64,000 bases of DNA from Anthoceros angustus (Eukaryota; Plantae; Anthocerotophyta). The notes beneath the pieces were generated by a model. That model saw nothing but the letters and a program-made list of their open reading frames with translations, had not been told where the DNA came from and ran no database searches. Position 1 is the stretch's first letter; each line of letters opens with the position of its first letter. Shown here one piece after another: positions 15,371 through 57,340 of this stretch. The translations under genes were made by a program, and so were the position numbers. The stretch lies in contig MU008165.1 in the NCBI GenBank assembly GCA_010909165.1, positions 1,054,001 to 1,118,000 on the forward strand, given 5' to 3'.

Positions 15371-15513
15371 CAAGCTCTATGGTGGAGTGATTGAAAGTAG
15401 CAAGAGGATTTTGGGCCGTGTTCAAGCAGCTATTTAGCAAGTGTCCTCGCCCACAGTGTGGTCCGCTGCTCAAAATCCTCCTGCTGCTTTCAATCACTCC
15501 ATCGTAGAGCTTG
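15371..15513 (+). ncRNA. Candidate pre-miRNA / hairpin RNA (46-bp stem, 51-nt loop)
   Basis: Arms 15371-15416 and 15468-15513 are reverse complements with 5 differences. Four of them are G:U pairs when the + strand is folded. Confidence 0.5.
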
Positions 15514-15584: not shown

Positions 15585-16302
15585 GTGCCCCAGGAACCGT
15601 TTAGGTGCCTGGAAAACGTTGACATGTACACAAAATGTGGCAGCTTGGAGGATGCCCGAACTGTCTTCGCCAGAATGGTGACCCGAGATGTTGTGATTTG
15701 GACTGCCAAGATAAGCAGGATACGCCGATCACGGGCTTGGCCTAGAAGCCGTCAAGTTGTATGCAAGTATGGAGCAGGAGGGCCCTGTGTGCACGAAAAG
15801 CATTTGATAATTGTCTGCTGGATCGGCTGTGACATGGATTGTATGATTGCTGGAAATGTTGAGCATGGGTGATTTGGTCGAGAAGCCCTGGCACTGGATG
15901 CACGTATGCAACAGCAGGGTATCTCTGCTGTGACATATGTTTGCCTCCTGAAAGCACGTGCTGAACTCGCAGAGTTAAATGAGGGCAGAAAGCTTCACCG
16001 TCAAATTCAATAGCAAGGGCCTGGTGGACGTGTACGCAAGGTGCGGCGACTTGATGGATGCTCACTGACTGTTGAACAGATTGCTGACAGGAGACGTGGG
16101 CACTTGGAAATGCCAGGATTGCAGGATATGTGCAGCATGGTGTTTGTCAAGAAGCTCTGGCTCTGTATGCAATGACGCAGCAGGTGAACATTAATTCAGC
16201 TGATAGGGCAACATTTATATGCTTGCTCAACTCCCACGACTAGCAGAGATAGCTGAGACTGTAGCTGAAGTTGCAGCACAGGCAATGTCAACCTTCGCGA
16301 CC
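15585..16302 (+). pseudogene. PLS-class PPR gene remnant, copy A
   Basis: VDMYTKCGSLEDARTVFARMVTRDVVIWTA, IAGYVQHG and ATFICLLN motifs, with frameshifts and stops. Confidence 0.8.
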
Positions 16303-17982
16303 TCGGGAGATGAGGCCACGAGAAAGGCGTGCTGCCCCAAGGGCTCAGAAGCCTCCTGCTGTTAATATTAGGCGATAGACTGTAGTACCTGGCAGTGCCG
16401 GTGCTGCAATGGACAAGTTCACTTTGGCATTGGAAAGCCTTGTCCACAGTGGGATAATTGGCAAGGTGTAATCCTTAGATTGTGGCTGTAGCTAATTGGC
16501 GTGCCTGGGCCTGAATGTGTTGCCACCTTGAATTGAGATTCGGCACCTTGTTTATAGGAGCCCGGAGATGGCTGAAGGTGGAGGTTAATGTGTTTCTTAA
16601 TCAAAGATTAAAGAAGAGTGAAGAAAATGTGATCGAGACAAGCAACAGCGAGGAGAGTGTCATTGAGACAAGCATTAGTGAGGAAAATGTGATGGACATG
16701 GGCAACAGTGAGGAGGATGTTAGTGGGATTCGGAAAGAGCGTAGGCCTCACGGAGGCCTGGTGTGGGGTTTTTTGGTCGGAGCCTTCTTTGTTTGTTTCC
16801 TCTCCGTTGTTTTCTCACCACAGCATCTACAAGACAGGCTGTTAGGGGTGCAGTTTTGGGGCCACAGCTTGCAGACGATGTGTGTGGGTTTCAGCTACAT
16901 AGTTCGTAACTGGCGCTTCGATGTTTGTGAAACTCCCGGGAGCCTGTGTGTGGGTAGGCATTTAAGTTCTTCCTTCTGTGGATGGCTCCTTTTTTTTTTC
17001 TGCAGGTGGCTACAGCTCAGAGGCTATATCTTATGCCGAAGCCCTGGTGGAGAGCAAGTTTGTTCCTCAGTTCCAGATGATGCAGCTTGGGGATCTCTAC
17101 AACCATGTCTTTCTCAAGGGATTGCCATCAAGGACGGAGGAGACTCTGGTTACTCTAATGGCTGGCGAAGTTGATGTCAGTCAAAGCGTCGTCATCTGCC
17201 ATAGTGAATCGGGAGCTTGGTATCCTCCTTTGTCCCAAACAACTCCTTGTCCTCCTGGAGGATGTGAGCAACCACTGTATGTGATAGGGCAGAACCATGT
17301 TTGAGACAGACTTGGTGACTGCAGACCATGTGGACCGCTGTAACTTGAGGGATGACGTATGGGTTTCAACAGACTTTCACACGGGATCGTCTGCCCGGAG
17401 TGGAGTTCATGCATCTAAGCTTGTGAAGGTGCCTCAGATCGTTGATGTGCATTTCTTTGATCCTAGCTATGTCCAAGCTTGCAGAATGCCTGCAGGGAGG
17501 TGCCTATACGTCAACTGTCGGGATGCTTTGGAACCCCAACGCTTTTTGTTTCTGATCTTTAAGTGGGAGATCAGGAAAGGATGGGGCACTCTTATCAAGG
17601 CTTACATGTAAGAGTTCACTGTGGAGGACAATGTTGTGCTACAGCTTTTGACAGATGTTTTTTATTCAGATCACGATATTGGTCGTTCATTCAGTCCTGA
17701 TAAAGCGAAGTCCACGACTTTGCTTTATGAAGGACATTTGAAGGAAAGGAACGTGAAGGAGCGGATAAGGCGGGATCCTAGTGAAGTTATTCGTAAAGCA
17801 GTTCTTCGGATGCTTCCCAGGAACAAGCTGAGAGATGTAGGTCCCGCTACTTGTTTCGATGCTTTGGGGCTGTTTGTGATCATTTCTCCATACCGAAGAA
17901 TGACTGGCATTTTGGTTGCTTTGGTACTGTTTCCCTTTGATGACAAGCCTCTGGAGCCACTTGTAATGCCTCCTAGAAAGGT
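16303..17982 (+). pseudogene. Inverted, circularly permuted duplicate of the uL13-glycosyltransferase locus: uL13 3' end, spacer, 5' two-thirds of the glycosyltransferase, filler, then the uL13 upstream exon and intron
   Basis: 16303-17682 is the reverse complement of ~56302-54815 and ~17726-17982 of ~56656-56303. The copy has frameshifts and a retained, partly deleted intron. Confidence 0.9.
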
Positions 17983-18699
17983 GTGTAGGATCTATCTAGT
18001 GCATTCGCACACAAAGGACGAATTCACGTTGCAGCAACACCATGCTCCCTGTTGTGAGTTCTGTTGTTCTATCATGTTCGGAAAGCACCTCGCATCTTCC
18101 TTACCCCTGGCCTAACTTTGTGTGGAATATTTCATGTGAACTCAGGCAGTCAAAGCAGATTTGGTGCTCGACAAAGTTGTTGCTGGCAGCGTGCTAACTG
18201 GCATGGAAAATGAGTGTTGCTTGCAAATCTACTCCTCTCGTAAGCGTGTTGCCATTGCATCATTAGGGTTGTGTGTTTGAGAAGGCTTCCGTGGATATGT
18301 TGATTGTTCGGAACGGCAAGACTGTGTACAACCGTCAGTGCATGTTCACGTATGTAGATTTAGTCCACTATCAAAGCTTTCACCTTTGTTCTATCCTTCC
18401 TTCACGAGAGCTGACAGGTCCTATCAGATGCAATGTCCCTCCCTGCCTGCTGGAATGCAATGTCCCTCCCTGCTTCCCTGCCTGCAGCAATGTATCTTCT
18501 TGAAGGAACAGGAATTCTTGGTTGCTGTAAGCTGTTAATGCTCTCCGGGGTTTTTTCCTGAGAGGACACAGCCTCATGAGGGACCGTCGGACAGAGACGA
18601 GGATACTGAACGAACTGCGTGGTCTGCCTGTGCTAATCATGCGCTTTGCCAAGAAGCCCACAAGCTGTACGCTAGTGTGGAGCAGGAGGTCCATGTGTC

Positions 18700-19570
18700 A
18701 CCCAATCACGTCACGTTTGTACCTCCTACCCTGAAAACCGTGTGAAAACATTGGAGCTTTGATTAAGGGTAACCACCTTCACTCTCATATTCAAGACAAA
18801 GGTCTTGTCATGAACATGGTTGTTGGTAGCTGTCTCGTGAGATGTGGGAGCTTAGAAGATGCTCGAAAAGTATTTGATGGATTGTCCGCTAGATCGGCTC
18901 TGACCTGGACTTGCGTGATTGCTGGATATGTTGAGCTTGGGTAATTTAGTCAAGGTGCCCTGGCACTGCATGCAAGTATACAACAGCATGATTTCTCTGT
19001 AGCAGGTGCTGTGACATACGTTTGCCTCCTAAAAGCATGTGCCTAAGTCGCAGCATTCAAATGAGGGCAGACAGCGTTCATCGCCAAATTCAAGAAAGTG
19101 GACTTGAGGATGATGTGAATATCGGCAAGGTCCTGGTAGAGGTGTATGCAAAGTGCGGCAACTTGATGGATGCTCTCCAATTGTTGGACAGATTGCAGAC
19201 AGGAGATTGTGGGCACATGGAAATGTCCTGATTGCAGGATATGTGCAGCATGGTGTTTGTCAAGAAGCTCTGGCTCTGTATGCGATGACACAGCAGGTGA
19301 ACGTCATTTCAGCTGATAGTGCAACATTTATATGCTTGCTCAACTCCCACGAGTAGCAGACATAGCTGGCACTGTAGCTGAAGTTGCAGCACGGAAATGT
19401 CAACCTTCGCAGCCTCGGGAGATGAGGCCACGAGAAAGGCGTGCTGCACCAAGGGCTCAGAAGCCTCCTGCTGTCAATACTAGGCGATAGACTGTAGTAT
19501 CTGGCAGTGCCGGTGCTGCAACGGACAAAATCACCTTGGCATAGGAAAGGCTTGTCCACAGTGGGATAGT
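18700..19570 (+). pseudogene. PPR remnant copy B, plus a truncated second copy of the uL13 3' end insertion (19415-19568)
   Basis: CGSLEDARKVFDGL..TWTCVIAGYV and EVYAKCGNLMDA. Same junction as at 16303: cttcgcagcc|tcgggagatgagg. Confidence 0.8.
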
Positions 19571-19788
19571 TAGAGTGCAACTACCAATCCTGGACACCAC
19601 GCTGGCCGCACCACGCTCGCCGCACCGAGAAGGTGCGACCCATTACGTTTGGCGTCCACCTTTCCACATCAGTGGTCATTAGAGTTGGCCCTACTCTCTA
19701 CTCGTCCATCAGATCATGGCTTCGGTGTGTACATAGCGAAATCCCAAAATACGCACGATTGCACTGGTGTTCACAGCAGCGGGGAGCC

Positions 19789-22700
19789 ATGGCGACGGCA
19801 CCGGGGCTGGCGCGCAAGCTGAAGAAAGTTTTGGAGACCCGTGCCGACTCCCCGGAGCTGCTGCCATCAGTGGGAACTCTCTCCACTTTCTACACCGAAA
19901 ACACGCTGCAGGCCCGCAGGAACCTGCGAGCTACGATTGAGAAGCGTGCACTGATGATCAATGACGAGTTCCTCAGAGCATACGAGTCCGCTCAGAAGGT
20001 CCTACACTCTTGCGGAGTTGCCCTGTAGATCCTAGGGTTTTGCTCCAGCAGTATGTATGTGTTGGATCTAACGCTTTATGTCGAGGTCCGTGGTCTTAGG
20101 TGATCTCATGTGTGTTTGCCAGGCTCTGGACGTGGTGGAGTTGGAGGTCGCTGGGTTAGCAGAGTGCTGTGATAGGTTAGGCTTCACCTTCAATCTCTTG
20201 TGTTCCGATGTTTGGTATAAAGTCTGGTCTTCACGTTTGTGATGATTTGACAGAATAGCCAAGTCATTGAGCAGCTGGAGTGCCACTACTGGCGATATAG
20301 TGACAGCTACAGACAGACTCAAGCAGGAGCTTGAAAACACCAACCAAAGACAAGAACTGATTGCAAACTTTCTGCACAATTATCAGCTCTCTCCTGAGGA
20401 GGTATGCATGTTCGTGTGAGGAGGATGTAACTGTCTGGTATCCTTCCTCGTTAGGCATGAACATTCGATCCGGCATTCCCAGGTGAATGCATTACGCGAA
20501 GATGATCTCAATGAGAACTTTTTCAAGGCACTCACACGTGTGCAAGAGATACATTCTAACTGCAAGGTTCTATTGCGTACACATCACCAGGTATTTTCTG
20601 TTCTGTCGAAACTTGTTGTTCATCTTTGACCTCTTAATGCCTCTCCTAATCGTTTGTGTTCTTCCTCTCTTCAGCGAGCAGGGCTAGAGTTGATGGACAT
20701 GATGGCTGTTTATCAAGAAGGGGCATATGAGCGACTTTGCAGGTACTCAGCTGCTGCACAGTATGAAAGCATTGAAGTCTTGCCCCGATCATAAATAGGT
20801 GCCAACTACAGGATATTTTCGTCGTATCTTTGCTCTAATTAGTCATCCTGGTGCCTTTTGTTTCGCATGCTGCAGCTCATCATCTGCCCGTTTCTCAGTC
20901 TGCTGATTCTGGCAGGTGGGTGCAGGCAGAGTGTCGTAGCCTCGGTGATAATGATACCCCTGAAGTCAGCGAGCTGTTGAAAACTGCTGCAGCAGCTTTG
21001 AAAGAAAGGCCGGTTCTTTTCAAATATTGTGCAGAGGAGGTGAGGGGATACCGCGCCGTCTATTGCTGTGTATGAGAAAGGCTGCAATCTGATGTCATTC
21101 CCAGATTGGTGCAGACCTTTCACTCAGTTAACCATCTTTGACTGTAAATGATAGGTGGCCAACACAAGACACAACGCCCTGTTTAGGCGCTTCCTCAGTG
21201 CACTTACACGAGGAGGTCCTGGTGGAATGCCCAGACCTATAGAAGTACATGCACCTGATCCGCTCCGATATGTTGGTGACATGCTTGCATGGCTTCATCA
21301 GGTAAAGCTAGGACAAAATCTCCAAAGTCTTCTAGGATTGCATCTTGAGATTAATTGTAGGTTGAACTGAGACACATCACTTCCTTCTGCAAAATTCAAC
21401 AGGCCTTGGCATCAGAGCATGATCTTGCTCTGGCGCTCTTCAACACAGATGCCACATTAGCCAATGGCTCTCGGAAGGGCTCATTTGATGGGTCAGCATC
21501 CAGGCGCTTTTCTAGAGATGTGGACAGAGACGAGAGCAAGGTTGAGACAGACATGGCTTTTGTACTTGATCGAGTATTTGAGGGAGTATGCCGGCCCTTC
21601 AAAATAAGGGTGGAACAGGTCTTGCAATCACAGCCGGGTCTTCTGTTGGCTTATAAGCTCAGCAATCTACTAGAGTTCTATACACACACCGTAAGTAGCT
21701 TTGTGTACAACGACGTGTGACCCTTTCCAGGTTGCAACCTAGTGGTCAAACTTGACAAATGACATGGTTTCGTGGCAAATTTGCAGGTCTCTGAATTACT
21801 TGGGCATGGTGCAGCTCTTTCAGCAACAGTAAGAGATTTGACAGATGTATCCAGGCAGACTTTCTTTGATATCATGAAGGTGCATGGAGACAAGCTTTTG
21901 AGATATCCAACTCCTGTTGCAGCGGACTTGTCACCTCCTGCAGCAGTAGGGGAAGGAGTTTCATTGTTACTAGAACTTATTGACAACTACGAGAGGATGA
22001 TGGTCCCAGCGGGTGGCAACAAACCAGACTTCGATCCAGTCATCGATGCTATTCTGAACCCTTTGAAACAAGTGAGTTCTTATGCAGCCAGCACTAGAGA
22101 GTTTTACTTTCACTGGAGAACGCAAAGCTAACTGTCTGTGTGGATGTCTACAACAGATGTGTGAACGTGCTGCAGAGTCATATGTGGGGAAACCTCAAAT
22201 GACACACGTCAGGAAACTTAGCAGTGGAGGCATAGACACTGGTCGCAGCTCTGGCACACAACGCAGGGCTAATACGGTTGAGAATATCTTGACTGGCTCA
22301 CACATCTCCATTCCCACTCAAGTAAGAGTCATTCCAGTTTCTGTTCCCACTTCCTCCACAAGCACGTCATTCTGTATGTCCTACTCCTTGGATCTAATAC
22401 GTGCGTGGTTTGATTGCAGGGAGTGACAGCCTTGCGACTCATTTTCTTGGTGAACTGCTTTTCAGCTATGCAGCAGCCTATGTTGTCACATGCTGTTGCG
22501 GAAAGCTGTGTGAACTCACTGGGAAATCTGATCGAGGGACACATGACAGCTCTTGTGCACCAGGAATCCAGTGCGATTCTTGAAAGGTGTGGCCTGAACA
22601 AAAAGCTGCAGTATATCAGTGAACGTCAATCAATGGCATCTTCGCATGCGGAAAGCGTGGCCAACGGAGCCGACGTTCACCCATTGGCTGATGTGGAGGA

Positions 22701-22959
22701 GTTGTCCCCTCTTGCGGTTGCAGAGTCTCTGCGGATTTTCTTTGGTCTCTTGGCAACAAAAGAGGGGGCTGTACGAGAATTTGAGCAGATCCAGGTTCCG
22801 CAGCTAAGGAGTGAAGCGAGCAGTAGAGTTGCGAGGGCTTTGGCAACTGCTTATGAGGCCCTTTATTTGGCTGTCAGTAATCCTGCAAATGGTTACCCGG
22901 ACCCTAAGACACTGCTCAGGCACACTCCCGAGCAGGTCCGGACTATGCTTGGAATATAA
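19789..22959 (+). CDS. COG6: Conserved oligomeric Golgi complex subunit 6, multi-exon
   Basis: [96 protein letters not shown], and C-terminal [13 protein letters not shown]. Consistent GT-AG introns. Confidence 0.95.
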
Positions 22960-23577: not shown

Positions 23578-24024
23578 TATGGACATGGTTGTTGGTAGTT
23601 GTCTCGTGGGCCTGTAGTGAAATGTGGGAGCTTAGAAGATGCTCGAAAAGCATTTGATAGATTGTCCGCTAGATCGGCTTGCGTGATTGCTGCATACGTT
23701 GAGCATGGGTGGTTTGATCAAGGTGCCCTAGCACTGCATGCAAGTACATGCAACAACAAGATATCTCTGTAGCAGATGCTGTAACACATCTTTGCCTCCT
23801 CAAAGCATATGCCGAACACAGAGCATGAAACGAAGGCACGCAGCTTTTATCTCCAAATTCAAGAAACTGGAATTGGGAATGATGTGAACAGCCTGGTGGA
23901 CATGTAAGCGAAGGGCGGTCACTTGATGGATGCTTACCATTGTTTGACAGATTGCAGACAGATGTGGGCAAACGGAAATGCCATGTTGCAAGATCTGTGC
24001 AACATGGTGTTTGTAAAGAAGCTC
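23578..24024 (+). pseudogene. PPR remnant copy C, left part (interrupted by the tandem array)
   Basis: Nucleotide match to 18810-19270 (tgtgggagcttagaagatgctcgaaaag...catggtgtttgtaaagaagctc). It resumes at 34695. Confidence 0.8.
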
Positions 24025-25939
24025 CCCATGGCACTTCTTCACAGCCAGCAGCAATATGCTGCAATTGCAGCCAAATGTCCAACAAAATTGTTGTAATCCT
24101 GGCTGGAAGCGCCACAAATCTGCAAGATTCTACAAAGCTACACCCATGCATGCCTGATTATGAGAGGGCATGAGGCTGGGGCAATACATTGTTGAGATTG
24201 GGTCCCTTGCTGATTTTGCTGCAAGTTGTCCAAGGCTTCAGTGAAGTGCTCAAAGGAAATCGTCAATTCATCAATCGTAGCTTGAATTTCTTGGAGTCTT
24301 CCGACGACAGCTCTAGTTAATTCTTTCTGCTACCTGATTGGAGACCCTCATCAGCAAATCCTCAGTACCTGAATTGAGCAGCTGTCCAGCACGAGATTGC
24401 TAGACAGATTCCAATCTTTGATTCTCTCAAGCTTGCTGATCATGGGCTGCTATACCATGATTGAAGGACATTCACGGGGAGAAGAACAAGAGCAATTCAG
24501 GGATTGTGATTTGCATTGGTACGATCTCCTACGGCTCCTTAGTTCAAGTTGTTGCTTGAACATCCGCTTTTGTAGGAGTTGATCAAGCTCCGCCTGTGTT
24601 CTAAGATGGTCAACAACACTGGTGGACCAAAATTTCACATCAACGCGGCACCCTGTCCTCCACGTCATCGCAGTAAATGGTAGCTAGTCACATTTGAATT
24701 ATCAACAGGCGGAGGAATGCAGCCCTAGCGGCCATGTGGTCCAAGGATGCTATAGGTTTGAAATGCAAGTAGAATATCATGAAGCTACCACAACATCCAT
24801 ACATTGAGCACCTAGTGCTCTCATACCATATTAATTTATGAGCGGAAGCTCTAAGCAAAATTGCACAACAAAGCAAGATGAAATTAATTAAAATCGATGA
24901 CAAAATTATCTTAAATACATGTAACGCGGTGTTGTAATGACCGTTCACGATTAACCTAAATATTAAAAAGTAATCACTGGTAGGTTAAACTAATTCCCCT
25001 ACTTCTAACATATCACAAAATAAGTGCAATTGATTGATGGTGTTCCTTTTTGTATTTCATGGTGAGCACACAATTTGCTACAGCTTCTCCTATGGTTTTG
25101 AGGAGAGTGCATCTAAGGCATAGATGCTTGCAACACCATCTCTACTTGGAGTACTAAAATAAAACTCCTCATTGGATTTGTGAAACAACCACTTCATTTG
25201 CACTTGCTTCAAACAAAACAACCATAAATGTGATGAAGGATCGGACAACAAAAACGACGTTGAACTCTTTGGCCATCCAGAACGAAATGCAACTTGACAA
25301 GTTGTCCTTGTCGCATTGTCTTCCTCCTGCTCCGGAAGATGCGTTACTTCAAACCAAGGATAACTAGTATTGTAGTGGACGTTTGTGATAACTCCTGGAG
25401 GATCCTGTGGTTCCACTTCATCGTGTTCTTCAAATAGTGCTCCCAAAGGTAGTGCTTCATCCATAACATCTGTTGTGAAAGGTTGTTTGTAAGTGAATGG
25501 CGCCCATTGCTCTGTAAATGCGTCCGAACCGATGTCACTTGCATCAAATTGTTTCAATTTTTCCCGATAAGTGGGTCAATCACAAGTATGCAGCAAGTGT
25601 TTTCAGCTATGTTATAAAAGGTTTTCACTTTTAAAATCTCTATGGTACCTGAGACTTCCCAAAGAAGGAAAGATCGTTTACGAGATCCTTCAAAATTTCA
25701 TTCTGGATTTTTCCCACTCTCCAAAATATGGGAACTCCGTTTGTCGCCATGGATGTAGGCTAGGAGCCACTTGTCCATCCTTAATGCCTCAACCTTTGCA
25801 TCATGCAAATTTCCGTAATAAGATTGCATAGGCGTATCGTGGAATGCGATGGCCATCGACCTTCATAAGTTACATGTGCGGTTGTCTTCATCATCTTGCA
25901 CATAAGCTTCTTCCCATGCGTCATTGTCTTGAGGCTTGC

Positions 25940-26185
25940 GCATCACTCCACGGTTGTCCATTGGTGGCTTCTTCACGAGTTTCGTGCCATGGTTCTCCAT
26001 GGGTAGCTTCTTCATTAGTTGCATCCCATGGTTGTTCATCACTCCATGGTTGGTCATCCGTGGTTTCTTTATAGGTTGCACTCCATGGTTGTTCATCACT
26101 CCATGGTTGGTCATCCGTGGTTTCTTCATAAGATGCACTCCATGGTTGTTCATATGTGGCTTCTTCATAAGTCTCACTCCACTCC
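25940..26185. repeat. Composite 15/30-nt minisatellite (ccatggttg core) encoding acidic Trp-containing repeats on the minus strand; also at 30240-30485 and 34430-34670
   Basis: Repeated catcactccatggttg / ccatggttggtcatccgtggtttctt; translates as (E)ETTDDQPWS(DEQPWS). Confidence 0.85.
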
Positions 26186-26841
26186 ACTGCGTCGGATTGG
26201 TTATCAATTTCACTCACCAATACATCTTCCCTATGGTTGCCTTCCATCTTGAATCAAAGGTAGACCGTAAACACTAAATAAGATTATGAAAAGAAGGTAA
26301 GCATGCGCACCTCCTCAAGGTCTTTGCTCTTTGCTTCTCTTGGATACTACAAGAGAGGAGCTTGACGATCTATGCCTTTGTCGCGCCGTGCGTTTGCTTA
26401 ATACAACCGCTATGGCTTTGGCACATGGTCTTAAGACATCAAAGGAACTTGTCGCTTGCAAGCTTAAAACGTCAATGTATATCGACTTGCATTCATAAAT
26501 ATAGCCTAGTATAGCACACATATATAGTATGTCCTTTATTTATATTCTCAACACACATATATAGTATGCATTCTCTATATTTATGGTCACTCCAAGTCTC
26601 ACTAAAAAGGAAAAATCTGGATCATGTGGGTTCATTTTGGAAAAATAAAATCAATGGATAGTAAAATAAATTGGTAGTTTTATATGAAATAATATGAGAT
26701 CTTTAAGGTTTTGTACGTTGGCCGTAAGTGTGGCGGTCCCTTTTTGTACCTTCCTATCTTGTGAGTTCTAACGCGAGACCCTTTGTTCTATCTATAATTT
26801 ATGGTCACGGTAATATTAAGCTTGACTATCACGCGGAAGCT

Positions 26842-27706
26842 TCATTTGCTAGACATTGACAATTGCGGTCGAGCCGCTTTGCTTTTGCGCACTCTCCACA
26901 TTATTTCGACTTGGGAAGGTCGAGTTTGCTTCAAACACCCTTTCATAACTCTTTTTGTGGCTTTTTGATTTTTCTTCTTCTTCTTCTTCTTCTTCTTGAT
27001 TTTTCTTCTTCTTCCCCTTCTGTCTTCCCTATCCAAACGCTTTTCCCTTTGATGCAACGAGAACCTCCTCAGTGCGCACCCTTCCGATGCCACTAGAATG
27101 AGTACTATGCTCCTCTTGAAGTAGGGTTCCAATGAGCTCATTAAGGGTCAGAGTTGGTGTTTTTCTCGATTTAATGCAGGATGCGCAAGGAAGAGTTCTA
27201 ATTGGAAACGAACTCGATAGAAAGGTGGAAGACTACGGAGGAGCTAAGCAACAACATCAATGTCTTGAGCTTGCTTGCCACCATGGCTAACCTTGCCTTG
27301 AGATAGCAAAACTTGCTTATGTGAGCTGCAATGTTGTCCCTCCCTTCATTCTCAGCCTAGTATTCGTTTCCGGTAGCAACTAGTGTGAGGATGTTATGAA
27401 CTTGATAAGTTTCTTTCAACTATGTCCATACATTTTCTTGTATGAAGGAACTCAACCTCGATCCGTGGCTTCATCCATACCAAAGAGTAGGATGGCAAAT
27501 GCAATCTTATTGCCTTTGTAAAACTTGGCGATGTCATCCGGTAAAGCTCTTGGGCGGTGGAGGGATAGAACCATCTACAAATTCCGGACATGTGTAGCAT
27601 CTAGAAAACCCTTCATTCTAGCCCTCCAACTCTCATACAGGTGATTTGCCATCAAATATGTCTTTTTCCGTAAAGCCCCACCATAGGATCCGGCTTGGGT
27701 AGTCAT
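26842..27706 (-). mobile_element. Ty1/Copia-type gag remnant inside the repeat unit (second copy ~31150-32020)
   Basis: Composite of both copies: DIFDG...WRARMKGFLDATHVWEFVDGSIPPP...IAFAILLFGMDE..TAANVWT..LKETY..RMKEGDNIAAHI, a Retrotran_gag_2/UBN2-like pattern. Frameshifted, with no pol. Confidence 0.65.
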
Positions 27707-27846
27707 GTTAGAAATAACCACGGGCGGGGAATGTAGGCTGGAAAGTTAGTTGAGAGGATTTTAGAAATTCGCCGTATCCTCATCCCCATCTATATCAACG
27801 GAAGGTAGCCACTAATAGCGATGCATGTGACCAAACTAGAAAGCGA

Positions 27847-28260
27847 CCATGTGCCCATAGGTGAAGTTGCAAAAGCTATAGTGATGTGAAGGGGCACTAA
27901 CTAACATCCTTCCACATTAACTTATAACGTTTCATTGTTATTTTTAGTGTTATGAAGAAAGGATAACTCAAGGGTTGTGAATAGGTGCCAGCTAGAAAAT
28001 AACAATTAGGGCACCATCCAGGTGGCATCTTTTCACCAACCGCCACAAGATCCCATGTGCCTAGAGGTGAAGTTGCAAAAGCTATAGTGATGTGAAGGGG
28101 CACTAACTAACATCCTTCCACATTAACTAATAACGTTTCATTGTTATTTTTAGGGTTTCTAAAGAAAGGAGAACTCAAGGGTTGTGAATAGGTGCGGTTA
28201 GAAAATAACAATTAGGGCACCGTGTGGCATCTTTTCACCAACCGCCACAAGATCCCATGG
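27847..28260. repeat. Two direct ~205-bp repeats at the unit junction (also 32147-32555)
   Basis: ccatgtgcc..gttgcaaaagctatagtgatgtgaagggg...ccgccacaagatcccatg occurs twice. Confidence 0.85.
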
Positions 28261-31200
28261 CACCTCTTCCGCAATATGCTGCAATTGCAAATGTCCAACA
28301 AAATTGTTGTAATCCTGGCTGGAAGCGCCACAAATCTGCAAGATTCTACAAAGCTACACCCATGCATGCCTGATTATGAGAGGGCATGAGGCTGCAATTG
28401 CAGCCAAATGTCCAACAAAATTGTTGTAATCCTGGCTGGAAGCGCCACAAATCTGCAAGATTCTACAAAGCTACACCCATGCATGCCTGATTATGAGAGG
28501 GCATGAGGCTGCAATACATTGTTGAGATTGGGTCCCTTGCTGATTTTGCTGCAAGTTGTCCAAGGCTTGAAGTGCTCAAAGGAAATCGTCAATTCATCAA
28601 TCGTAGCTTGAATTTCTTGGAGTCTTCCGGCTCTAGGTAATTCTTTCGCTACGATTGGAGACCCTCATCATCAAATCCTCGATTACTGAATTGAGCGGTT
28701 GTCCACGAGATTGCTAGGATTCCAATCTTTGATTCTCTCAAGCTTGCGATCATGGGCTGCTATACCATGATTGCAAGGACATTCACGGGAGAAGAACAAG
28801 AGCAATTCGGGGATTGTGATTTGCATTGTACGATCTCCTACGGCTCCTTAGTTCAAGTTGTTGCTTGAACATCCGCTTTGTAGGAGTTGATCAAGCTCAC
28901 TGTGTTCTAAGATGGTCAACAACACCGGTGGACCAAAATTTCACATCAACGCGGCACCTGTCCTCCGTCATCGCGATAAATGGTAGCTAGTCACATTTGA
29001 ATTATCAGCGGAGGAATGCATTCGGCCATGTGGTCCAAGGATGCTATAGGTTTGAAATGCAAGTAGAATATCATGAAGCTACCACAACATCCATGCATTG
29101 AGCACCTAGTGCTCTCATACCATATTAATTTATGAGCGGAAGCTCTAAGCAAAATTGCACAACAAAGCAAGATGAAATTAATTAAAATCGATGACAAAAT
29201 TATCTTAAATACATGTAACGCGGTGTTGTAATGACCGTTCACGATTAACCTAAATATTAAAAAGTAATCACTGGTAGGTTAAACTAATTCCCCTACTTCT
29301 AACATATCACAAAATAAGTGCAATTGATTGATGGTGTTCCTTTTTGTATTTCATGGTGAGCACACAATTTGCTACAGCTTCTCCTATGGTTTTTGAGGAG
29401 AGTGCATCTAAGGCATAGATGCTTGCAACACCATCTCTACTTGGAGTACTAAAATAAAACTCCTCATTGGATTTGTGAAACAACCACTTCATTTGCACTT
29501 GCTTCAAACAAAACAACCATAAATGTGATGAAGGATCGGACAACAAAAAGCACGTTGAACTCTTTGGCCATCCAGAACGAAATGCAACTTGACAAGTTGT
29601 CCTGTCGCATTGTCTTCCTCGCTCGTCGGAAGATGCGTTACTTCAAACCAAGGATAACTAGTATTGTAGTGGACGTTTGTGGCGATAACTCCTGGAGGAT
29701 CCTGTGGTTCCACTTCATCGTGTTCTTCAAATAGTGCTCCCAAAGGTAGTGCTTCATCCATAACATCTGTTGTGAAAGGTTGTTTGTAAGTGAATGGCGC
29801 CCATTGCTCATCAATGCGTCCGAACCGATGTCACTTGCATCAAATTGTTTCAATTTTTCCCGATAAGTGGGTCAATCACAAGTATGCAGCAAGTGTTTTC
29901 AGCTATGTTATAAAAGGTTTTCACTTTTAAAATCTCTATGGTACCGAGACTTCCCAAAGAAGGAAAGATCGTTTACGAGATCCTTCAAAATTTCATTAGT
30001 GGATTTTTCCCACTCTCCAAAATATGGGAACTCCGCTTTGTCGCCATGGATGTAGGCTAGGAGCCACTTGTCCATCCTTAATGCCTCAACCTTTGCATCA
30101 TGCAAATTTCCGTAATAAGATTGCATAGGCGTATCGTGGAATGCGATGGCCATCGACCTTCATAAGTTACATGTGCGAAGTTGTCTTCATCATCTTGCAC
30201 ATAAGCTTCTTCCCATGCGTCATTGTCTTGAGGCTTGCGCATCACTCCACGGTTGTCCATTGGTGGCTTCTTCACGAGTTTCGTGCCATGGTTCTCCATG
30301 GGTAGCTTCTTCATTAGTTGCATCCCATGGTTGTTCATCACTCCATGGTTGGTCATCCGTGGTTTCTTTATAGGTTGCACTCCATGGTTGTTCATCACTC
30401 CATGGTTGGTCATCCGTGGTTTCTTCATAAGATGCACTCCATGGTTGTTCATATGTGGCTTCTTCATAAGTCTCACTCCACTCCACTGCGTCGGATTGGT
30501 TATCAATTTCACTCACCAATACATCTTCCCTATGGTTGCCTTCCATCTTGAATCAAAGGTAGACCGTAAACACTAAAATAAGATTATGAAAAGAAGGTAA
30601 GCATGCAGCCTCCTCAAGGTGCTCTTTGCTTCTCTTGGATACTACAAGAGAGGAGCTTGACGATCTATGCCTTTGTCGCCATGGTTCTCCATGGGTAGCT
30701 TCTTCACGAGTTTGCTTAATACAACGCTATGGCTTTGGCACATGGTCTTAAGACATCAAAGGAACTTGTGCGCTTGCAAGCTTAAAACGTCAATGTATAT
30801 CGACTTGCATTCATAAATATAGCCTAGTATAGCACACATATATAGTATGTCCTTTATTTATATTCTCAACACACATATATAGTATGCATTCTCTATATTT
30901 ATGGTCACTCCAAGTCTCACTAAAAAGGAAAAATCTGGATCATGTGGGTTCATTTTGGAAAAATAAAATCAATGGATAGTAAAATAAATTGGTAGTTTTA
31001 TATATGAAATAATATGAGATCTTTAAGGTTTTGTACACGTAAGTGTGACGGTCCCTTTTTGTACCTTCCTATCTTGTGAGTTCTAACGCGAGACCCTTTG
31101 TTCTATCTATAATTTATGGTCACGGTAATATTAAGCTTGACTATCACGGAAGCTTCATTTGCTAGACATTGACAATTGCGGTCGGTTACCGCTGCTTTTG

Positions 31201-34200
31201 CGCACTCTCCACATTATTTCGACTTGGGAAGGTCGAGTTTGCTTCAAACACCCTTTCATAACTCTTTTGTGGCTTTTTGATTTTTCTTCTTCTTCTTCTT
31301 CTTCTTGATTTTTCTTCTTCTTCCCTTCTCTCTTCCCTATCCAAACGCTTTTCCCTTTGATGCAACGAGAACCTTCTCGTGCACCCTTCCGATGCCACTA
31401 GAATGAGTACTATGCTCCTCTTGAAGTAGGGTTCCAATGAGCTCATTAAGGGTCGAGTTGGTGTTTTTCTCGATTTAATCGCAGAAGATGCTCGCAAGGA
31501 AGAGTTCTAATTGGAAACGAACTGATAGAAAGGTGGAAGACTACGGAGGAGCTAAGCAACAACATCAATGTCTTGAGCTTGCTTGCCACCATGGCTAACC
31601 TTGCCTTGAGATAGCAAAACTTGCTTATGTGAGCTGCAATGTTGTCCCTCCCTTCATTCTCAAGTATTCGTTTCCGGTAGCAACTAGTGTGAGGATGTTA
31701 TGAACTTGATAAGTTTCTTTCAACTATGTCCAGACATTTGCTGCTGTATGAAGGAACTCAACCTCAGTCACCGTGGCTTCATCCATACCAAAGAGTAGGA
31801 TGGCAAATGCAATCTTATTGCCTTTGTAAAACTTGGCGATGTCATCCGGTAAAGCTCTTGGGCCAGGTGGAGGGATAGAACCATCTACAAATTCCCAGAC
31901 ATGTGTAGCATCTAGAAAACCCTTCATTCTAGCCCTTCAACTCTCATACAGGTGATTTGCCATCAAATATGTCTTTTTCCGTAAAGCCCCACCATAGGAT
32001 CCGGCTTGGGTAGTCATGTTAGAAATAACCACGGAACTGGGGAATGTAGGAAAGTTAGTTGAGAGGATTTTAGAAATTCGCCGTATCCTCATCCCCATCT
32101 ATATCATGAAGACCACTAATAGCGATGCATGTGACCAAACTAGAAACCATGTGCCCATAGGTGTTGCAAAAGCTATAGTGATGTGAAGGGCACTAACTAA
32201 CATCCTTCCACATTAACTAATAACGTTTCATTGTTATTTTTAGTGTTATGAAGAAAGGATAACTCAAGGGTTGTGAATAGGTGCCACTAGAAAATAACAA
32301 TTAGGGCACCGTCGGTGGCATCTTTTCACCAACCGCCACAAGATCCCATGTGCCTAGAGGTGAAGTTGCAAAAGCTATAGTGATGTGAAGGGCACTAACT
32401 AACATCCTTCCACATTAACTAATAACGTTTCATTGTTATTTTTAGGGTTTCTAAAGAAAGGAGAACTCAAGGGTTGTGAATAGGTGCCGCTTAGAAAATA
32501 ACAATTAGGGCACCGTCGGTGGCATCTTTTCACCAACCGCCACAAGATCCCATGGCACCTCTTCACGTGACAATATGCTGCAATTGCAGCCAAATGTCCA
32601 ACAAAATTGTTGTAATCCCAAGCGCCACAAATCTGCAAGATTCTACAAAGCTACACCCATGCATGCCGATTATGAGAGGGCATGAGGTGGGCAATACATT
32701 GTTGAGATTGGGTCCCTTGCTGATTTTGCAAGTTGTCCAAGGCTTGATGAAGTGCTCAAAGGAAATCGTCAATTCATCAATCGTAGCTTGAATTTCTTGG
32801 AGTCTTCCGGCGACAGCTCTAGGTAATTCTTTCGCTACACGATTGGAGACCCTCATCATCAAAATCCTCGATTACTGAGCGGTTGTCCGACGAGATTGCT
32901 AGATTCCAATCTTTGATTCTCTCAAGCTTGCGATCATGGGCTGCTATACCATGATTGCAAGGGCGTTCACGGGAGAAGAACAAGAGCAATTCGAGGATTG
33001 TGATTTGCATTGGTACGATCTCCTACGGCTCCTTAGTTCAAGTTGTTGCTTGAACATCCGCTTTGTAGGAGTTGATCAAGCTCCGTGTTCTAAGATGGTC
33101 AACAACACTGGTGGACCAAAATTTCACATCAACGCGGCACTGTCCTCCGCCATCGCGAAATGGTAGCTAGTCACATTTGAATTATCAGCGGAGGAATGCG
33201 GCCCTAGCGGCCATGTGGTCCAAGGATGCTATAGGTTTGAAATGCAAGTAGAATATCATGAAGCTACCACAACATCCATGCATTGAGCACCTAGTGCTCT
33301 CATACCATATTAATTTATGAGCGGAAGCTCTAAGCAAAATTGCACAACAAAGCAAGATGAAATTAATTAAAATCGATGACAAAATTATCTTAAATACATG
33401 TAACGCGTGTTGTAATGACCGTTCACGATTAACCTAAATATTAAAAAGTAATCACTGGTAGGTTAAACTAATTCCCCTACTTCTAACAAAGATATCACAA
33501 AATAAGTGCAATTGATTGATGGTGTTCCTTTTTGTATTTCATGGTGAGCACACAATTTGCTACACCGGCTTCTCCTATGGTTTTTGAGGAGAGTGCATCT
33601 AAGGCATAGATGCTTGCAACACCATCTCTACTTGGAGTACTAAAATAAAACTCCTCATTGGATTTGTGAAACAACCACTTCATTTGCACTTGCTTCAAAC
33701 AAAACAACCATAAATATGATGAAGGATCGGACAACAAAAAACGACGTTGAACTCTTTGACCATCTAGCAAACGAAATGCAACTTGACAAGTTGTCCCTGT
33801 CGCATTGCCTTCCTCTGGCTCGTCAGGGAGATGTGTTACTTCAAACCAAGGATAACTAGTATTGTAGTGGACGTTTGTGGCGATAACTCCGGAGGATCCT
33901 GTGGTTCCACTTCATCGTGTTCTTCAAATAGTGCTCCCAAAGGTAGTGCTTCATCCATAACATCTGTGAAAGGTTGTTTGTAAGTGAATGGCGCCCATTG
34001 CTCACAATGCGTCCGAACCGATGTCACTTGCATCAAATTGTTTCAATTTTTCCCGAAGTGGGTCAATCACAAGTATGCAGCAAGTGTTTTCAGCTATGTT
34101 ATAAAAGGTTTTCACTTTTAAAATCTCTATGGTACCTGAGACTTCCCAAAGAAGGAAAGATCGTTTACGAGATCCTTCAAAATTTCATTAGTGGATTTTT

Positions 34201-34694
34201 CCCACTCTCCAAAATATGGGAACTCCGTTTTGTCGCCATGGATGTAGGCTAGGAGCCACTTGTCCATCCTTAATGCCTCAACCTTTGCATCATGCAAATT
34301 TCCGTAATAAGATTGCATAGACGATACGTGGAATGCGATGGCCATCGACCTTCATAAGTTACATGTAAGTTGTCTTCATCATCTTGCACATAAGCTTCTT
34401 CCCATGCGTCATTGTCTTGAGGCTTGCGCATCACTCCACGGTTGTCCATTGGTGGCTTCTTCACGAGTTTCGCCATGGTTCTCCATGGGTAGCTTCTTCA
34501 TTAGTTGCATCCCATGGTTGTTCATCACTCCATGGTTGGTCATCCGTGGTTTCTTTATAGGTTGCACTCCATGGTTGTTCATCACTCCATGGTTGGTCAT
34601 CCGTGGTTTCTTCATAAGATGCACTCCATGGTTGTTCATATGTGGCTTCTTCATAAGTCTCACTCCACTCCACTGCGTCGGATTGGTTATCAAT

Positions 34695-35205
34695 AATTAT
34701 GCAACAGCGGTGCAGGAAAACATCAATCCAGCTGATACGGCAACATTTGTATGCTTGATCAACTCCTATGACTAGCAGAGATAGCTGGCATTGTAGCTAA
34801 AGTTGCACCACAGCAAATATCATCTTCGCGGCTTTATGTAGGATCGAGTGCATTCGCACATAAAGGAGGGATTCACGTTGCAGCAACACCGGTTCCATGC
34901 GCCGTGTTGTGAGTGCGCTTTCCGGACGAGGAAATATTTTAGACAAGATAAATTCTGTCGTTCTACATTGTCCGGATCCGTATCTCGTGACCTTCCTTAT
35001 CCCTTGCCGCACTCGGTGCGGAACATTTCATGCTGTGTTGCTTGACACAAATGATGTTGGCAGCGTGTTAGCTCGCATAAACCAGATGGAAGTGAGAATG
35101 TTGATTGCAAATCTACTCCTTTCATAAGCGTATTGCCGTTGCATCTTTGGGGTTGTGTGTTTGACAAGGCATCTGCTTCCATAAAGATAGTCGGAAGGGC
35201 AGGGA
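34695..35205 (+). pseudogene. PPR remnant copy C, right part and downstream tail; contains the empty site (34824-34842) for the 16303-17982 insertion
   Basis: INPADTATFVCLINS, then continuous sequence matching 16200-16302 joined directly to 17983-18330. Confidence 0.8.
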
Positions 35206-54306: not shown

Positions 54307-56037
54307 TTAACCGGTTTGCCTACTCTCTAACAGCTTCTGCACACGCAGAAAATGAGAGAGAATCTGGAGCCCAACAACCTCAGGAGAGTACTTAGAAACC
54401 ATGGTTTCCCGAGCCTCCGACCCCTTTGCTTTCGCCTCAAGTTGGTTGCTCATCACATGCCTCATCAACTTTTGCAAACCCTCTAACGAAGGCTCCGCCC
54501 ACTGGTGTCCTTTGAACGGCCCTTGCTTCACTTGAACAAGCCTTGTTACAGGTATAGGGTAACTGTTGTCCTCTGTCATGTATTCTGTCATGCCAGACCA
54601 GTTGGTTGCAATAACAGGGAGGCCCATGGCCATGGCTTCCACATGAGGACGACCCCATCCTTCACCCCTAGATGGCAGCACAAAAGCATCTGCCAACTTA
54701 TATAGACCTGGAAGCTTGGTCTGGGGAACATGCTCGTCCAGCAGGTACAATGTTGGCCAGCTCTCAGGTGGTCTGGGATCACCCAACCCCCGCACAAACT
54801 CCTGAATCTTGCTGCCAAAATCGTGATCTGAATGAAAAGCATTTGTCAAAAGATACAGCACTACATTGTCCTCCACAGAGAACTCCTGTATATAAGCCTT
54901 GATAAGAATGTCCCATCCTTTCCTGATCTCCCACTTAAAGATACTCAGAAACACAAAGCGTTGAAGTTCCAAAGCATCCCTACAGTTGCCACATAGGCAC
55001 CTCCCTGCAGGCATTCTGGTAGCTTGGACACGGCTAGGATCAAAGAAGTGCACATCAACGATCTGAGGCACCTTCACAAGCTTGGATGCATGAACTCCAC
55101 TCCGGGCAAAAGTTCCCATGTGAAAGTCTGTTGGAACCCATACTTCATCCATTAAGTTACAGCGGACCACATGATCCGCATTCACCATGTCCGTCTCGAA
55201 CATGGTTCTGCCAATGACATACAGTGGTTGCTCATATCCTCCAGGAGGACAAGGAGTTGTTTGGAACAGTGGAGGATACCAAGCTCCCGGTTCACTATGG
55301 CAGATGACGACACTTTGACTGACATCAACTTCACCAGCCATAAGGGTAACTAGAGTCTCCTTCGTCTTTGATGGCAATCCCTTGAGGAAGACATGGTTGT
55401 AGAGATCCCCATGCTGCATAATCTGGAACTGAGGAACAAACTTGCTCTCCACCAGGGCTTCGGCATAGGATATAGCTTCTGAGCTGTAACCACCGGCAGA
55501 AAAAAAAGGAGCCATCCACAGAAGCGAGAACTTGAATGCCTCCCCAGACACAGGCTCTGGGAGTTTCACAAACACCCAGTTCTCAACCAAGTGCCAGTAA
55601 CGAGCTATGTGGCTGAAACCCACACTGACTGTGTGTAAGCTGTGCACCCAAAACTGAACATCTAACAGCCTATCTTGTACATGCTGTGGTGAGAAAACAA
55701 AGGAGAGGAAACAAACAAAAAAGGCTACCGACCAAAAACCCCAAACCAACCCTCTGTGAGGCCTACGCCGTTTCTGAATCCCACTGACATCCTCCTGACT
55801 CTTGCTCGTCTCCATCACATTTTCCTCACTATCGCTTGTCTCAATGACACTCTCCTCACTGTTGCTTGTCTCAATGACACTCTCCTCACTGTTGCTTGTC
55901 TCAATGACACCCTCCTCACTGTTGCTCGTCTCAATGACACTCTCCTCACTGTTGCTTGTCTCAATCACATTTTCTTCACTCTCCTTTAATACTTGATTCA
56001 AAATGTTTTCCTCAAACTGCCTCCCACCTTCAGCCAT
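54307..56037 (-). CDS. Intronless GT-B fold glycosyltransferase (GT4/Glycos_transf_1) with N-terminal repeats and a membrane anchor
   Basis: WMAPFFSAGGYSSEA, IGRTMFETD, DEVWVPTDF, FLSIFKWEIRKGWDILIKAY, and FVLPSRGEGWGRPHVEAMAMGLPVIATNWSG (E-x7-E motif). Confidence 0.92.
   Translation of the reverse strand: MAEGGRQFEENILNQVLKESEENVIETSNSEESVIETSNSEEGVIETSNSEESVIETSNSEESVIETSDSEENVMETSKSQEDVSGIQKRRRPHRGLVWGFWSVAFFVCFLSFVFSPQHVQDRLLDVQFWVHSLHTVSVGFSHIARYWHLVENWVFVKLPEPVSGEAFKFSLLWMAPFFSAGGYSSEAISYAEALVESKFVPQFQIMQHGDLYNHVFLKGLPSKTKETLVTLMAGEVDVSQSVVICHSEPGAWYPPLFQTTPCPPGGYEQPLYVIGRTMFETDMVNADHVVRCNLMDEVWVPTDFHMGTFARSGVHASKLVKVPQIVDVHFFDPSRVQATRMPAGRCLCGNCRDALELQRFVFLSIFKWEIRKGWDILIKAYIQEFSVEDNVVLYLLTNAFHSDHDFGSKIQEFVRGLGDPRPPESWPTLYLLDEHVPQTKLPGLYKLADAFVLPSRGEGWGRPHVEAMAMGLPVIATNWSGMTEYMTEDNSYPIPVTRLVQVKQGPFKGHQWAEPSLEGLQKLMRHVMSNQLEAKAKGSEARETMVSKYSPEVVGLQILSHFLRVQKLLESRQTG
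55800..55982 (-). repeat. 30-bp coding tandem repeat x6 (EESVIETSNS)
   Basis: gttgcttgtctcaatgacactctcctcact repeated. Confidence 0.95.
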
Positions 56038-56226
56038 CTCTGGGCTTCTATAAGCAAGATACCGAATCTCAATTCAAGGGGCCAACACATTCGTGCCCAG
56101 GCACACCAATTAGCTCCAGCCGCAATCTAAAGGCTACACCTTGTCAATTATCCCACTGTGGACAAAGCTTTCCAATGCCAAGTTGAACTTGTCCATTGCA
56201 GCACCGACACTGCCAGACCCTACAGT

Positions 56227-57340
56227 CTATCGCCTAGTATTAACAACAGGAGGCTTTTGAGCCCTTGCTGCAGCACGCCTTTCTCGTGGCCTCATCTCCC
56301 GAACCTTTCTAGGGGGCATCACAAATGGCTCCAGAGGTTTGTCATCAAAGGGATGATTGTCATCCGCAAAGATTCGGAGTTTAAGAGCTCGGTCCTGCAG
56401 CACACACAACCAAAATACCCATCATTCTTCGATAAGGAGCAATGATCACAAACAGTCCCAAAGCAACCAACATACCCATCATTCTTCGGTGAGGAGAAAT
56501 AATCACAAACAGTCCCAAAGCTTCCAAACAAGTAGCGGGACTTACATCTCTCAGCTTGTTCCTGGGAAGCATCCGAAGAACTGCTTTACGAATAACTTCA
56601 CCAGGATCCCGCCTCATCTGCTCCTTCACGTTCCTCTCCTTCAAATGTCCGACATATCTACAACAGCCACCGCCACGCACGTTCAATACACATAACCACG
56701 CAAAGCCACGCAGCTCCGACCAGCTCACCCCGTATGCCATCGGTAGAATTTGTCGGTCAGCTTCCTCCCGGACAAAGCAACGTCCTTGGCATTCAGCACA
56801 ACACAGACATCCCCCCGATCCAGATACGGAGTATACGTCGGCTTGTCCTTCCCTTGCAGCACCACGGAGATCTGTGAAGCCAGCCTGCCAAGAATCTGCG
56901 GCTCTAACAGCTCAGCGCAACAACTAAATCTCTACAATAGCCAAAAACAGACCGTGGGCCGGCCCACCCACCTGCCCCTGCGCATCAAAAACTCGCCATC
57001 TCAGCCCCTGCGTGTTGGCAGGCGTCAAACCGGCAGTGGCTCTCTGCACTCGAACAAGCAGGCATCAGACGCTGCTGTCTCCAATTCCGGGCACGAAATC
57101 GAATCTGTCAAACCTAGCTACCCACCCGCACTGCGTTTAGAGCAGCCCTGTTCATCGGACTGTCTGGAGCCTGACGGAATCCAGTCGCTCAGGAGGCCAG
57201 GCACACATGCATCGATCAAGCCCAGCCAGACCCTACAGAATCTGCAATTTGCGATTTCTAAGGGCGAGAGGCCATGCATTGACCAAATTCCAAGCAAACC
57301 TAGGCCTTCGCGAGTACACACGCCCTAAGTCGCGAATCAT
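56227..57340 (-). CDS. RPL13: Ribosomal protein uL13, bacterial/mitochondrial type, multi-exon (start approximate)
   Basis: GLRWRVFDAQGQ|ILGRLASQISVVLQGKDKPTYTP..GDVCVVLNA..KFYRWHTG|YVGHLKER..DPGEVIRKAVLRMLPRNKLRD|DRALKLRIF..HPF.DKPLEPFVMPPRKVREMRPR. Confidence 0.93.

Follow-up and report, generated by a model that had tools for sequence, protein, structure and literature searches.

What leaves two neighbouring genes partly duplicated, with the two halves of the copy in swapped order? In the 64,000-nt stretch of hornwort DNA analysed here (Anthoceros angustus; hereafter the window), positions 16303-17982 hold a decayed 1.7-kb partial copy of two adjacent genes (K2P of ~0.09-0.12 relative to the donor). 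The cyclic change of order from AB to BA has been used in publications as a signature of circle-mediated duplication (PMC7450558, PMC7188851, bioRxiv 10.64898/2026.09.03.749254), and Takahashi and Innan warned that nested local rearrangements can mimic the pattern when the duplicates lie close together on one chromosome (PMC7188851). The question raised by this locus is whether its joints point to a DNA circle that was opened and re-inserted or to another route.

We compared positions 16101-18200 with the window by blastn, conducted a full self-comparison and globally aligned every junction. The source of the copy is the minus strand of positions 54815-56656, 38 kb away, and the copy stands in inverted orientation. 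Using blastn and global alignment, 16303-17682 was found to correspond to donor 56302-54815 (88.9% identity over 1376 aligned nt; K2P 0.121), 17732-17932 to donor 56650-56450 (92%) and 17932-17982 to donor 56353-56303 (92%); the start of the second segment extends to 17726, which equals donor 56656. These matches are well outside chance, with E-values ranging from 0 to 1e-14. Along the copy, the blocks follow each other as 56302 to 54815, a 43-nt filler, and 56656 to 56303, and both blocks (16303-17682, segment A, and 17726-17982, segment B) derive from the donor minus strand, which makes the order a cyclic permutation (BA for AB). Donor positions 56449-56354 are missing from the copy; they comprise the 3' end of the last uL13 intron and the first bases of the last exon. 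Segment B as a whole is 91.4% identical to the donor over 257 nt. Differences from the donor were counted at 153 of 1376 sites in segment A and at 22 of 257 sites in segment B (11.1% and 8.6%, respectively; P = 0.27; Fisher test). The two segments are thus equally diverged from the donor, which suggests one event and argues against two successive insertions. The positions of all features are given in Table 1.

Table 1. Positions, strand and supporting evidence of the copy, its donor and the PPR remnants in the window.
Feature	Positions	Strand	Evidence
R1, left flank: decayed PPR remnant up to the left junction	15790..16302	+	self-blast, 4-way alignment; PPR motifs in ORF translation
Copy segment A, part 1: last 76 nt of uL13 CDS, donor 56302 to stop at 56227	16303..16378	+	alignment, 93%; Pfam Ribosomal_L13 in ORFs of donor exons
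Copy segment A, part 2: 189-nt uL13-glycosyltransferase intergenic spacer, donor 56226-56038	16379..16567	+	189 aligned nt, 87.8%, gapless
Copy segment A, part 3: GT4 glycosyltransferase, 5' 1.22 kb, now a pseudogene, donor 56037-54815	16568..17682	+	alignment; donor ORF resembles plant GT4 / AT3G10630-like proteins
43-nt filler connecting donor 54815 to donor 56656 (inner joint)	17683..17725	+	unmatched in donor
Copy segment B: uL13 penultimate exon from second base (56656), partial last intron, last exon to 56303	17726..17982	+	alignments; splice sites
R1, right flank: PPR remnant continued	17983..18330	+	aligns to paralogue 34843-35200
R2: second PPR remnant, mosaic; 5' part groups with R3, 3' part with R1	18837..19414	+	informative sites, changepoint
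c2: second left junction and first 157 nt of insert, donor 56302-56146	19415..19571	+	self-comparison, alignment
R3	23617-24024 plus 34712-35170		self-blast, alignment
Uninterrupted paralogous site within R3; junction-equivalent between 34830 and 34843	34712..34890	+	alignments
R4	42367-42729		Pfam PPR
Intact 576-aa GT4-family glycosyltransferase ORF, intronless here, 5' part copied	54307..56037	-	Glycos_transf_1
Donor segment (1842 nt): uL13 from penultimate exon to stop, then spacer and first 1223 nt of intact glycosyltransferase ORF	54815..56656	-	alignments
Organelle-type uL13 3' exons	56227..56865	-	ORFs, Pfam Ribosomal_L13, splice sites

The two donor genes lie on the same strand, 189 nt apart, and both the donor and the 36-kb interval that separates it from the copy are intact and in normal orientation. 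The uL13 exons in this region are one ending at 56727 (5' splice GT at 56726), one at 56657-~56547 and the last at ~56394-56227. The 576-aa glycosyltransferase ORF presents 51-63% identity to AT3G10630-like proteins of mosses, lycophytes, seed plants and other plants. A close glycosyltransferase paralogue was considered as a rival donor: among the database proteins compared, which evidently include none of this species, the best match was 63% identical, so this comparison is uninformative. A Harbinger-type transposase ORF is located at 58292-59359, outside the donor segment. The loose ends of short-read contigs also point to a fourth copy of the uL13 3' region, which lies outside the window and is uninterrupted between 56303 and 56302; searching for it with a 55-aa uL13 exon query yielded no fragment from this species.

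The copy itself is a pseudogene in its glycosyltransferase part, with three in-frame stops and several frameshifts. Some of the single-base frameshifts may be assembly errors, since the assembly presents many 1-nt indels relative to short-read contigs. The 30-nt units repeated near the N-terminus number three in the copy and six in the donor (a 90-nt gap), and the divergence of the two glycosyltransferase sequences amounts to a dS of 0.23 and a dN of 0.09; the resulting pairwise dN/dS of 0.40 provides no date for the loss of function. On the uL13 side, Pfam Ribosomal_L13 matches the ORF at 17621-18115, which covers segment B. The initial annotation had taken a retained intron as a sign that the event was DNA-mediated. 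The partly retained intron and the retained intergenic spacer indeed indicate a DNA-level origin; the intron concerned is a single one, the last of uL13, and solely its 5' part is present (17836-17931). A possible intron within the glycosyltransferase part was rejected, as the stretch resembling a polypyrimidine tract and AG is coding and conserved in homologues.

Three novel joints were identified: the left flank with donor 56302, donor 54815 with donor 56656 across the filler, and donor 56303 with the right flank. In the global alignments, the first base of the copy (16303, TCGGGAGATG) aligns to donor 56302 and its last base (17982, ...CCTAGAAAGGT) to donor 56303, and the next base outward mismatches the donor at both ends. 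This indicates that the copy begins and ends at neighbouring bases of the donor, with no gap and no overlap, and that zero donor bases were lost or duplicated at the opening point between 56302 and 56303. Given the age of the event (K2P about 0.12), the fine detail of the junctions in the copy may have mutated. The inner joint connects the two distal ends of the donor interval (54815 and 56656) across the 43-nt filler, for which global alignment revealed no match in the donor. A search of the 64-kb window with exact k-mers, longest common substrings and blastn-short yielded no template for the filler above the level of shuffled fillers. The swapped order, the adjacency of the outer ends, the ~43-nt filler and the inverted insertion ~38 kb away had all been proposed from a reading of the sequence, and the alignments bear out each of them.

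The two outer joints present microhomology of 0-2 nt. We found no terminal inverted repeats bracketing the insert, and aligning the flanks to the paralogous site revealed no target-site duplication (TSD). The 43-nt filler, the scant microhomology, the lack of a TSD and the lack of flanking inverted repeats suggest that the joints were made by end joining. One breakpoint has a further property: segment B starts one base inside the penultimate uL13 exon, at the 3' splice site. A breakpoint that near a splice site is expected by chance in ~0.3-1% of cases per breakpoint.

The insertion site lies in a decayed PPR gene. Self-blast and a four-way alignment identified four copies of such PPR-gene remnants in the window (R1 to R4), and the insert interrupts R1. 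When joined, the flanks of the insert align straight over the junction to 34680-35230 in R3; their continuity in R3 indicates that the flanks are one interrupted sequence. At the junction, R3 has ~7 nt and R1 has 5 nt, corresponding to a target loss of ~2-4 nt. The R paralogues are less similar to each other (81-85% identity) than the insertion is to its donor (89%), which suggests that the R copies are older than the insertion, and the R3 site is for this reason a fair proxy for the empty site. The claim that the empty site itself is preserved in the window stands in this weaker form: the R3 site is 81-90% identical to the R1 flanks and is a paralogue, not the same locus. R3 is interrupted upstream by a 10.7-kb array (24025-34694). 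This array consists of 2.49 units of 4.3 kb and was inserted without a TSD.

We detected a second left junction, at 19414/19415, which the initial annotation had missed. Positions 19125-19571 match 16013-16456 at 90.6%, and the position of the junction is identical in the two (16302/16303 and 19414/19415). Beyond the first 157 nt of the insert, the homology of this second copy (c2) ends abruptly, ~200 nt upstream of the coding start of COG6, and the unique sequence that follows leads into the COG6 gene (Pfam COG6_N and COG6_C). The remnant to its left, R2, is a mosaic. Left of about position 15905 in R1 coordinates, R2 shares 44 sites with R3 and 15 with R1, whereas right of it 53 sites are shared with R1 and 21 with R3 (P about 1e-7; Fisher test, with the changepoint chosen post hoc). 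The two copies of the left junction differ at 12 of 158 sites. Within the 157 nt, eight sites unite both copies against the donor, eight are private to c2 and four are private to the other copy, c1. The most likely origin of c2 is a later one-sided gene conversion, in which a break in R2 was repaired from R1 across the junction and then end-joined. The acquisition by R2 of the junction and 157 nt of insert from R1 indicates that the permuted insertion is an old, inherited change. A Campbell-type insertion of a larger circle was rejected as an explanation of R1 and R2: the repeated part includes the junction, so the junction is older.

An error of assembly has to be weighed against these data, and we attach a minimal probability to a chimeric or misjoined long-read assembly as the source of the permuted order. 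The assembly is noisy, with the many 1-nt indels mentioned above, and the left junction is not bridged by at least 31 nt among the contigs listed. Short-read contigs, which come from one public DNA run that is possibly of the same sample as the assembly, do span the inner joint with its filler (17556-17810) and likewise the joint on the right (17788-18545). For the left joint, a contig among those listed covers no more than 8 nt of the flank; three loci share the 33 nt that follow the junction without a difference, a situation in which k-mer contigs break. The left joint is nevertheless present in two diverged copies, and a divergence of 9-12% between copy and donor cannot arise by misassembly.

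The copy thus displays the sequence-level features by which duplications mediated by extrachromosomal circular DNA (eccDNA) are recognised: a cyclic shift, adjacent outer ends, a closure joint and blocks of the same age. The most economical reading of the locus is a circle, opened at a single point and inserted into a break by end joining, and we hold this to be the probable course of events, with moderate confidence. A 1.84-kb nuclear stretch (the penultimate uL13 exon, the 189-nt spacer and 1.22 kb of the glycosyltransferase) would have been released or copied as free DNA, and its ends at 54815 and 56656 would have been joined by non-homologous end joining with the 43-nt filler, yielding a circle of ~1.9 kb. 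This circle would then have been broken once, bluntly, between 56303 and 56302, and the permuted linear molecule would have been end-joined, in inverted orientation, into a double-strand break of the dead PPR remnant 38 kb away. Such an insertion would have cost ~2-4 target bases and made no target-site duplication, and the donor would have stayed intact or been restored, so the event would be duplicative. Subsequently, a break in R2 would have been repaired on the R1 template, copying the left junction and 157 nt, and the new R2 strand would have been end-joined upstream of COG6. All the copies would have decayed as pseudogenes afterwards. A circle closed with filler, opened once and end-joined accounts for all three joints and for the length of one unit, since a single cut in one circle releases exactly one unit. 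The circle proposed by the initial annotation agrees with the pattern in this respect, but the joints do not reveal the order in which they were made, and our confidence is limited for this reason; that a circle existed, in what order joining and breaking took place and which repair pathways acted are all deduced from the product.

The same product would result if a linear 54815-56656 fragment broke between 56302 and 56303 and its two pieces were ligated in swapped order and in the same orientation, with the filler between them. All three joints would be identical to those left by a circle, which counts against the circle reading. The 43-nt filler suggests that sloppy end joining was at work, and the capture of several fragments with filler at plant double-strand breaks is an established repair behaviour, which also counts for swapped linear pieces. 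However, the observed product is one of eight arrangements of order and orientation, the self-ligation of a 1.8-kb fragment was presumably favoured kinetically over three intermolecular ligations, and both ends of the break between 56302 and 56303 must have persisted without loss of bases while awaiting different partners. We consider this route unlikely. Copying by replication is, in our view, quite unlikely, whether by template switching (SDSA, FoSTeS or MMBIR) or by colinear copying across the joint of a tandem or concatemer that has been lost or lies elsewhere. In the former case, the break in the PPR remnant would prime at 56302, copying would proceed to 54815, jump to 56656, continue to 56303 and return. 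With the target inverted and just 38 kb from the donor, switches are to be expected (PMC7450558, discussion), and the short distance on the same chromosome counts against a circle, as nested local rearrangements can mimic its footprint. One-sided copying did occur later at this locus, when R2 gained the junction and 157 nt. The further uL13 3' copy outside the window also favours a copying route and counts against a circle, in that an unseen donor might already carry the filler joint. What copying leaves unexplained is a stop exactly one base short of the start, which is expected by chance in ~1 of 1,800 cases; a tandem or concatemer would likewise give no cause to stop after exactly one unit. 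Moreover, the joints present no usable microhomology, and at the donor and elsewhere in the 64-kb window we found no trace of a tandem duplication or of the filler, nor a second locus with the closure joint (54815, filler, 56656).

The inner breakpoint lies no more than one base from a 3' splice site, a position that random breakage does not predict and that counts against the circle reading; it raises the possibility of an RNA intermediate. A read-through transcript of uL13 and the glycosyltransferase, circular or template-switched during reverse transcription, would have been inserted as DNA. Read-through is plausible for two genes on the same strand at such a short distance, and segment B starts where a back-splice acceptor would be expected. 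Against this, the last uL13 intron is partly kept and the intergenic spacer is kept. On its far side, the inner joint has no splice donor, and 43 unrelated nt, which match neither the upstream exon nor the intron, intervene. The insert also has no poly(A) tail and no TSD. These observations make an RNA-mediated origin very improbable. A processed retrocopy was rejected on similar grounds (part of an intron and the spacer present, poly(A) and TSD absent). Transposon capture by Pack-MULE, Harbinger/PIF or Helitron elements was also rejected: there are no terminal inverted repeats and no TSD, and the insert ends in ...AAAGGT, not CTRR. Insertion of a circle by homologous recombination, as in the Woodhouse model, was discarded as the joints are non-homologous and lack flanking direct repeats; the repeat shared by R1 and R2 includes the junction itself, which indicates that it postdates the insertion and is not a recombination repeat. 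Finally, we asked whether the two outer joints could be those of a simple inversion with end points at the PPR site and between 56302 and 56303, and rejected this given the intact and normally oriented donor and 36-kb interval.

The footprint fits a known class of events and is unusual in being small, resolved at the level of single bases and located in a land plant. Filler DNA and the capture of ectopic sequences at plant double-strand breaks have reportedly been described by Gorbunova and Levy and by Salomon and Puchta. Captures of that kind resemble the present locus in combining unlinked genomic DNA with short filler, small target deletions and no TSD; however, they are colinear with their source, and the adjacency of the two outer ends in the donor is left unexplained by them. 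A circle has been proposed in plants for the duplicative movement of genes in Arabidopsis (Woodhouse et al. 2010, PMC2869330), as we propose here. In that model, circles form and insert by homologous recombination between repeats, which predicts flanking direct repeats and needs no permutation, whereas closure and insertion are non-homologous in the hornwort and no flanking repeats are present.

Closer parallels to the permuted order come from animals. The same diagnostic was applied to human segmental duplications (A-B/C-D to B-A/D-C; Chicote et al. 2020, PMC7450558) and to eccDNA-mediated duplications (Takahashi and Innan 2020, PMC7188851). Those cases share with the hornwort copy blocks that change places but keep their orientation, joints with no more than microhomology or short indels, and a location that is not in tandem. 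The human cases span 20-130 kb or above, and the majority lack base resolution, whereas for the hornwort copy all three joints are known at base level and an uninterrupted paralogous target lies next to them. In cattle, circle-mediated serial translocation at the KIT locus (Durkin et al. 2012, via PMC12722694 and PMC7450558) is reported as a comparable case: a cyclically permuted segment located elsewhere, with non-homologous closure and re-insertion joints, that is heritable. The KIT segments are reportedly hundreds of kb long, recent, polymorphic and associated with a phenotype, in contrast to the hornwort copy, which is 1.8 kb, ancient (about 12% diverged), non-functional and in a plant, with a 43-nt filler at closure. 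Polymorphic AB to BA insertions have also been reported from human long reads, together with experimental integration of eccDNA in the mouse germline (bioRxiv 10.64898/2026.09.03.749254). Those insertions are young and polymorphic and come with colinear controls and experiment, whereas we describe a single, presumably fixed, old event. In wine yeast, the amplification of a segment from Zygosaccharomyces bailii is reported to involve a circular intermediate, invoked, as here, for copies at different loci (Galeote et al. 2011, PMC3053389); that segment differs in being 17 kb long, horizontally acquired, fungal and present in several copies.

Base-by-base records of the heritable re-insertion of a circle are few (cattle, human and yeast), and plant examples of such scars are rare in the literature. 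For germline circle reintegration, a 2025 perspective refers to animals only (PMC12722694), and eccDNA is abundant in plants, for example in rice (PMC10948907). In a limited search of the literature, we found no base-resolved AB to BA footprint of non-transposon DNA in a plant. Taken alone, the locus is an old, non-functional scar without a phenotype and is no proof of a circle. Plants do not separate soma and germline early. It is conceivable, if doubtful, that small end-joined genic circles re-enter the germline genome repeatedly in this hornwort and constitute a regular route of duplicative transposition, in which case this locus would be one of several independent permuted footprints, perhaps including the array in R3; a crude scan of pairs of blast matches, which did not take chains into account, identified tandem repeats only when searching the window for other AB to BA pairs. 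The three joints, the intact donor and the paralogous uninterrupted target, all within 64 kb, provide concrete criteria for a genome-wide census of such events in plants.

The permuted copy (16303-17982), a decayed duplicate of the donor locus (54815-56656, minus strand) with its halves swapped, differs from the donor in the number of short repeats. The glycosyltransferase N-terminus (donor 55779-55980) contains 30-nt repeat units encoding SNSEESVIET-like peptides, six in the donor and three in the copy (a 90-nt gap), and the copy has no counterpart of the 58-nt tandem duplication that the donor carries in its last uL13 intron (56407-56521). These differences indicate that repeat numbers changed after the duplication.

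The permuted copy has its inner breakpoint (donor 56656/56657; copy 17725/17726) at most one base from the 3' splice site of the penultimate uL13 exon. Because the rest of the permuted structure fits no RNA-based model, this match is left as a coincidence without explanation, with a chance of roughly 1%. A fourth copy of the uL13 3' end, located outside the window, was seen in a short-read contig (loose ends at 19415 and 19459) and is unbroken over the 56303/56302 point. Over a 30-nt stretch, 3 nt distinguish it from the donor and likewise 3 nt from each copy in the window, and it may represent a second uL13 gene, a homeologue or a pseudogene.

Several other elements were found in the window (see table). 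The tandem array, whose units are about 95% similar to one another, splits the PPR-gene remnant R3 exactly at a point that is unbroken in the remnants R1, which holds the permuted copy, and R2 (R1 coordinates 16157-16180). We found no target-site duplication, TG..CA ends, ORF of at least 170 aa or Pfam domain for this array, which represents either an insertion that was then amplified in tandem or a concatemer inserted as such. The inverted-repeat pair, whose inner edges carry short tandem repeats (40977-41200), could be an element of the foldback or long-TIR type. The uL13 exons are separated by 1.4 kb from the transposase ORF, which is upstream of them and outside the copied segment. The insertion site of the permuted copy is about 800 nt downstream of the palindrome.

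Other features in the window
Feature	Window position	Strand	Description
Near-perfect palindrome	15371-15513		46-nt arms, 89% complementary; 51-nt loop
Mosaic PPR remnant R2 with uL13 fragment	18837-19571		157-nt uL13 fragment
COG6 region	19633-22959		
Tandem array	24025-34694		10.7 kb; 2.49 units of 4.3 kb, head-to-tail
Inverted-repeat pair	36772-37497 and 40299-41022		arms about 725 nt, 91% identical; about 2.8 kb between
Harbinger/PIF-type transposase ORF	58292-59359	-	355 aa, intact-looking; Pfam DDE_Tnp_4, Plant_tran

Comparison of the assembly with short-read contigs over 15800-19800 revealed at least 17 indels of one or two bases in these 4 kb and only two substitutions. Caution is needed wherever GCA_010909165.1 shows a frameshift in an apparent pseudogene. 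Finally, the coding start of COG6 is about 200 nt downstream of the end of R2 and its uL13 fragment, which therefore make up the promoter-proximal region of this gene.
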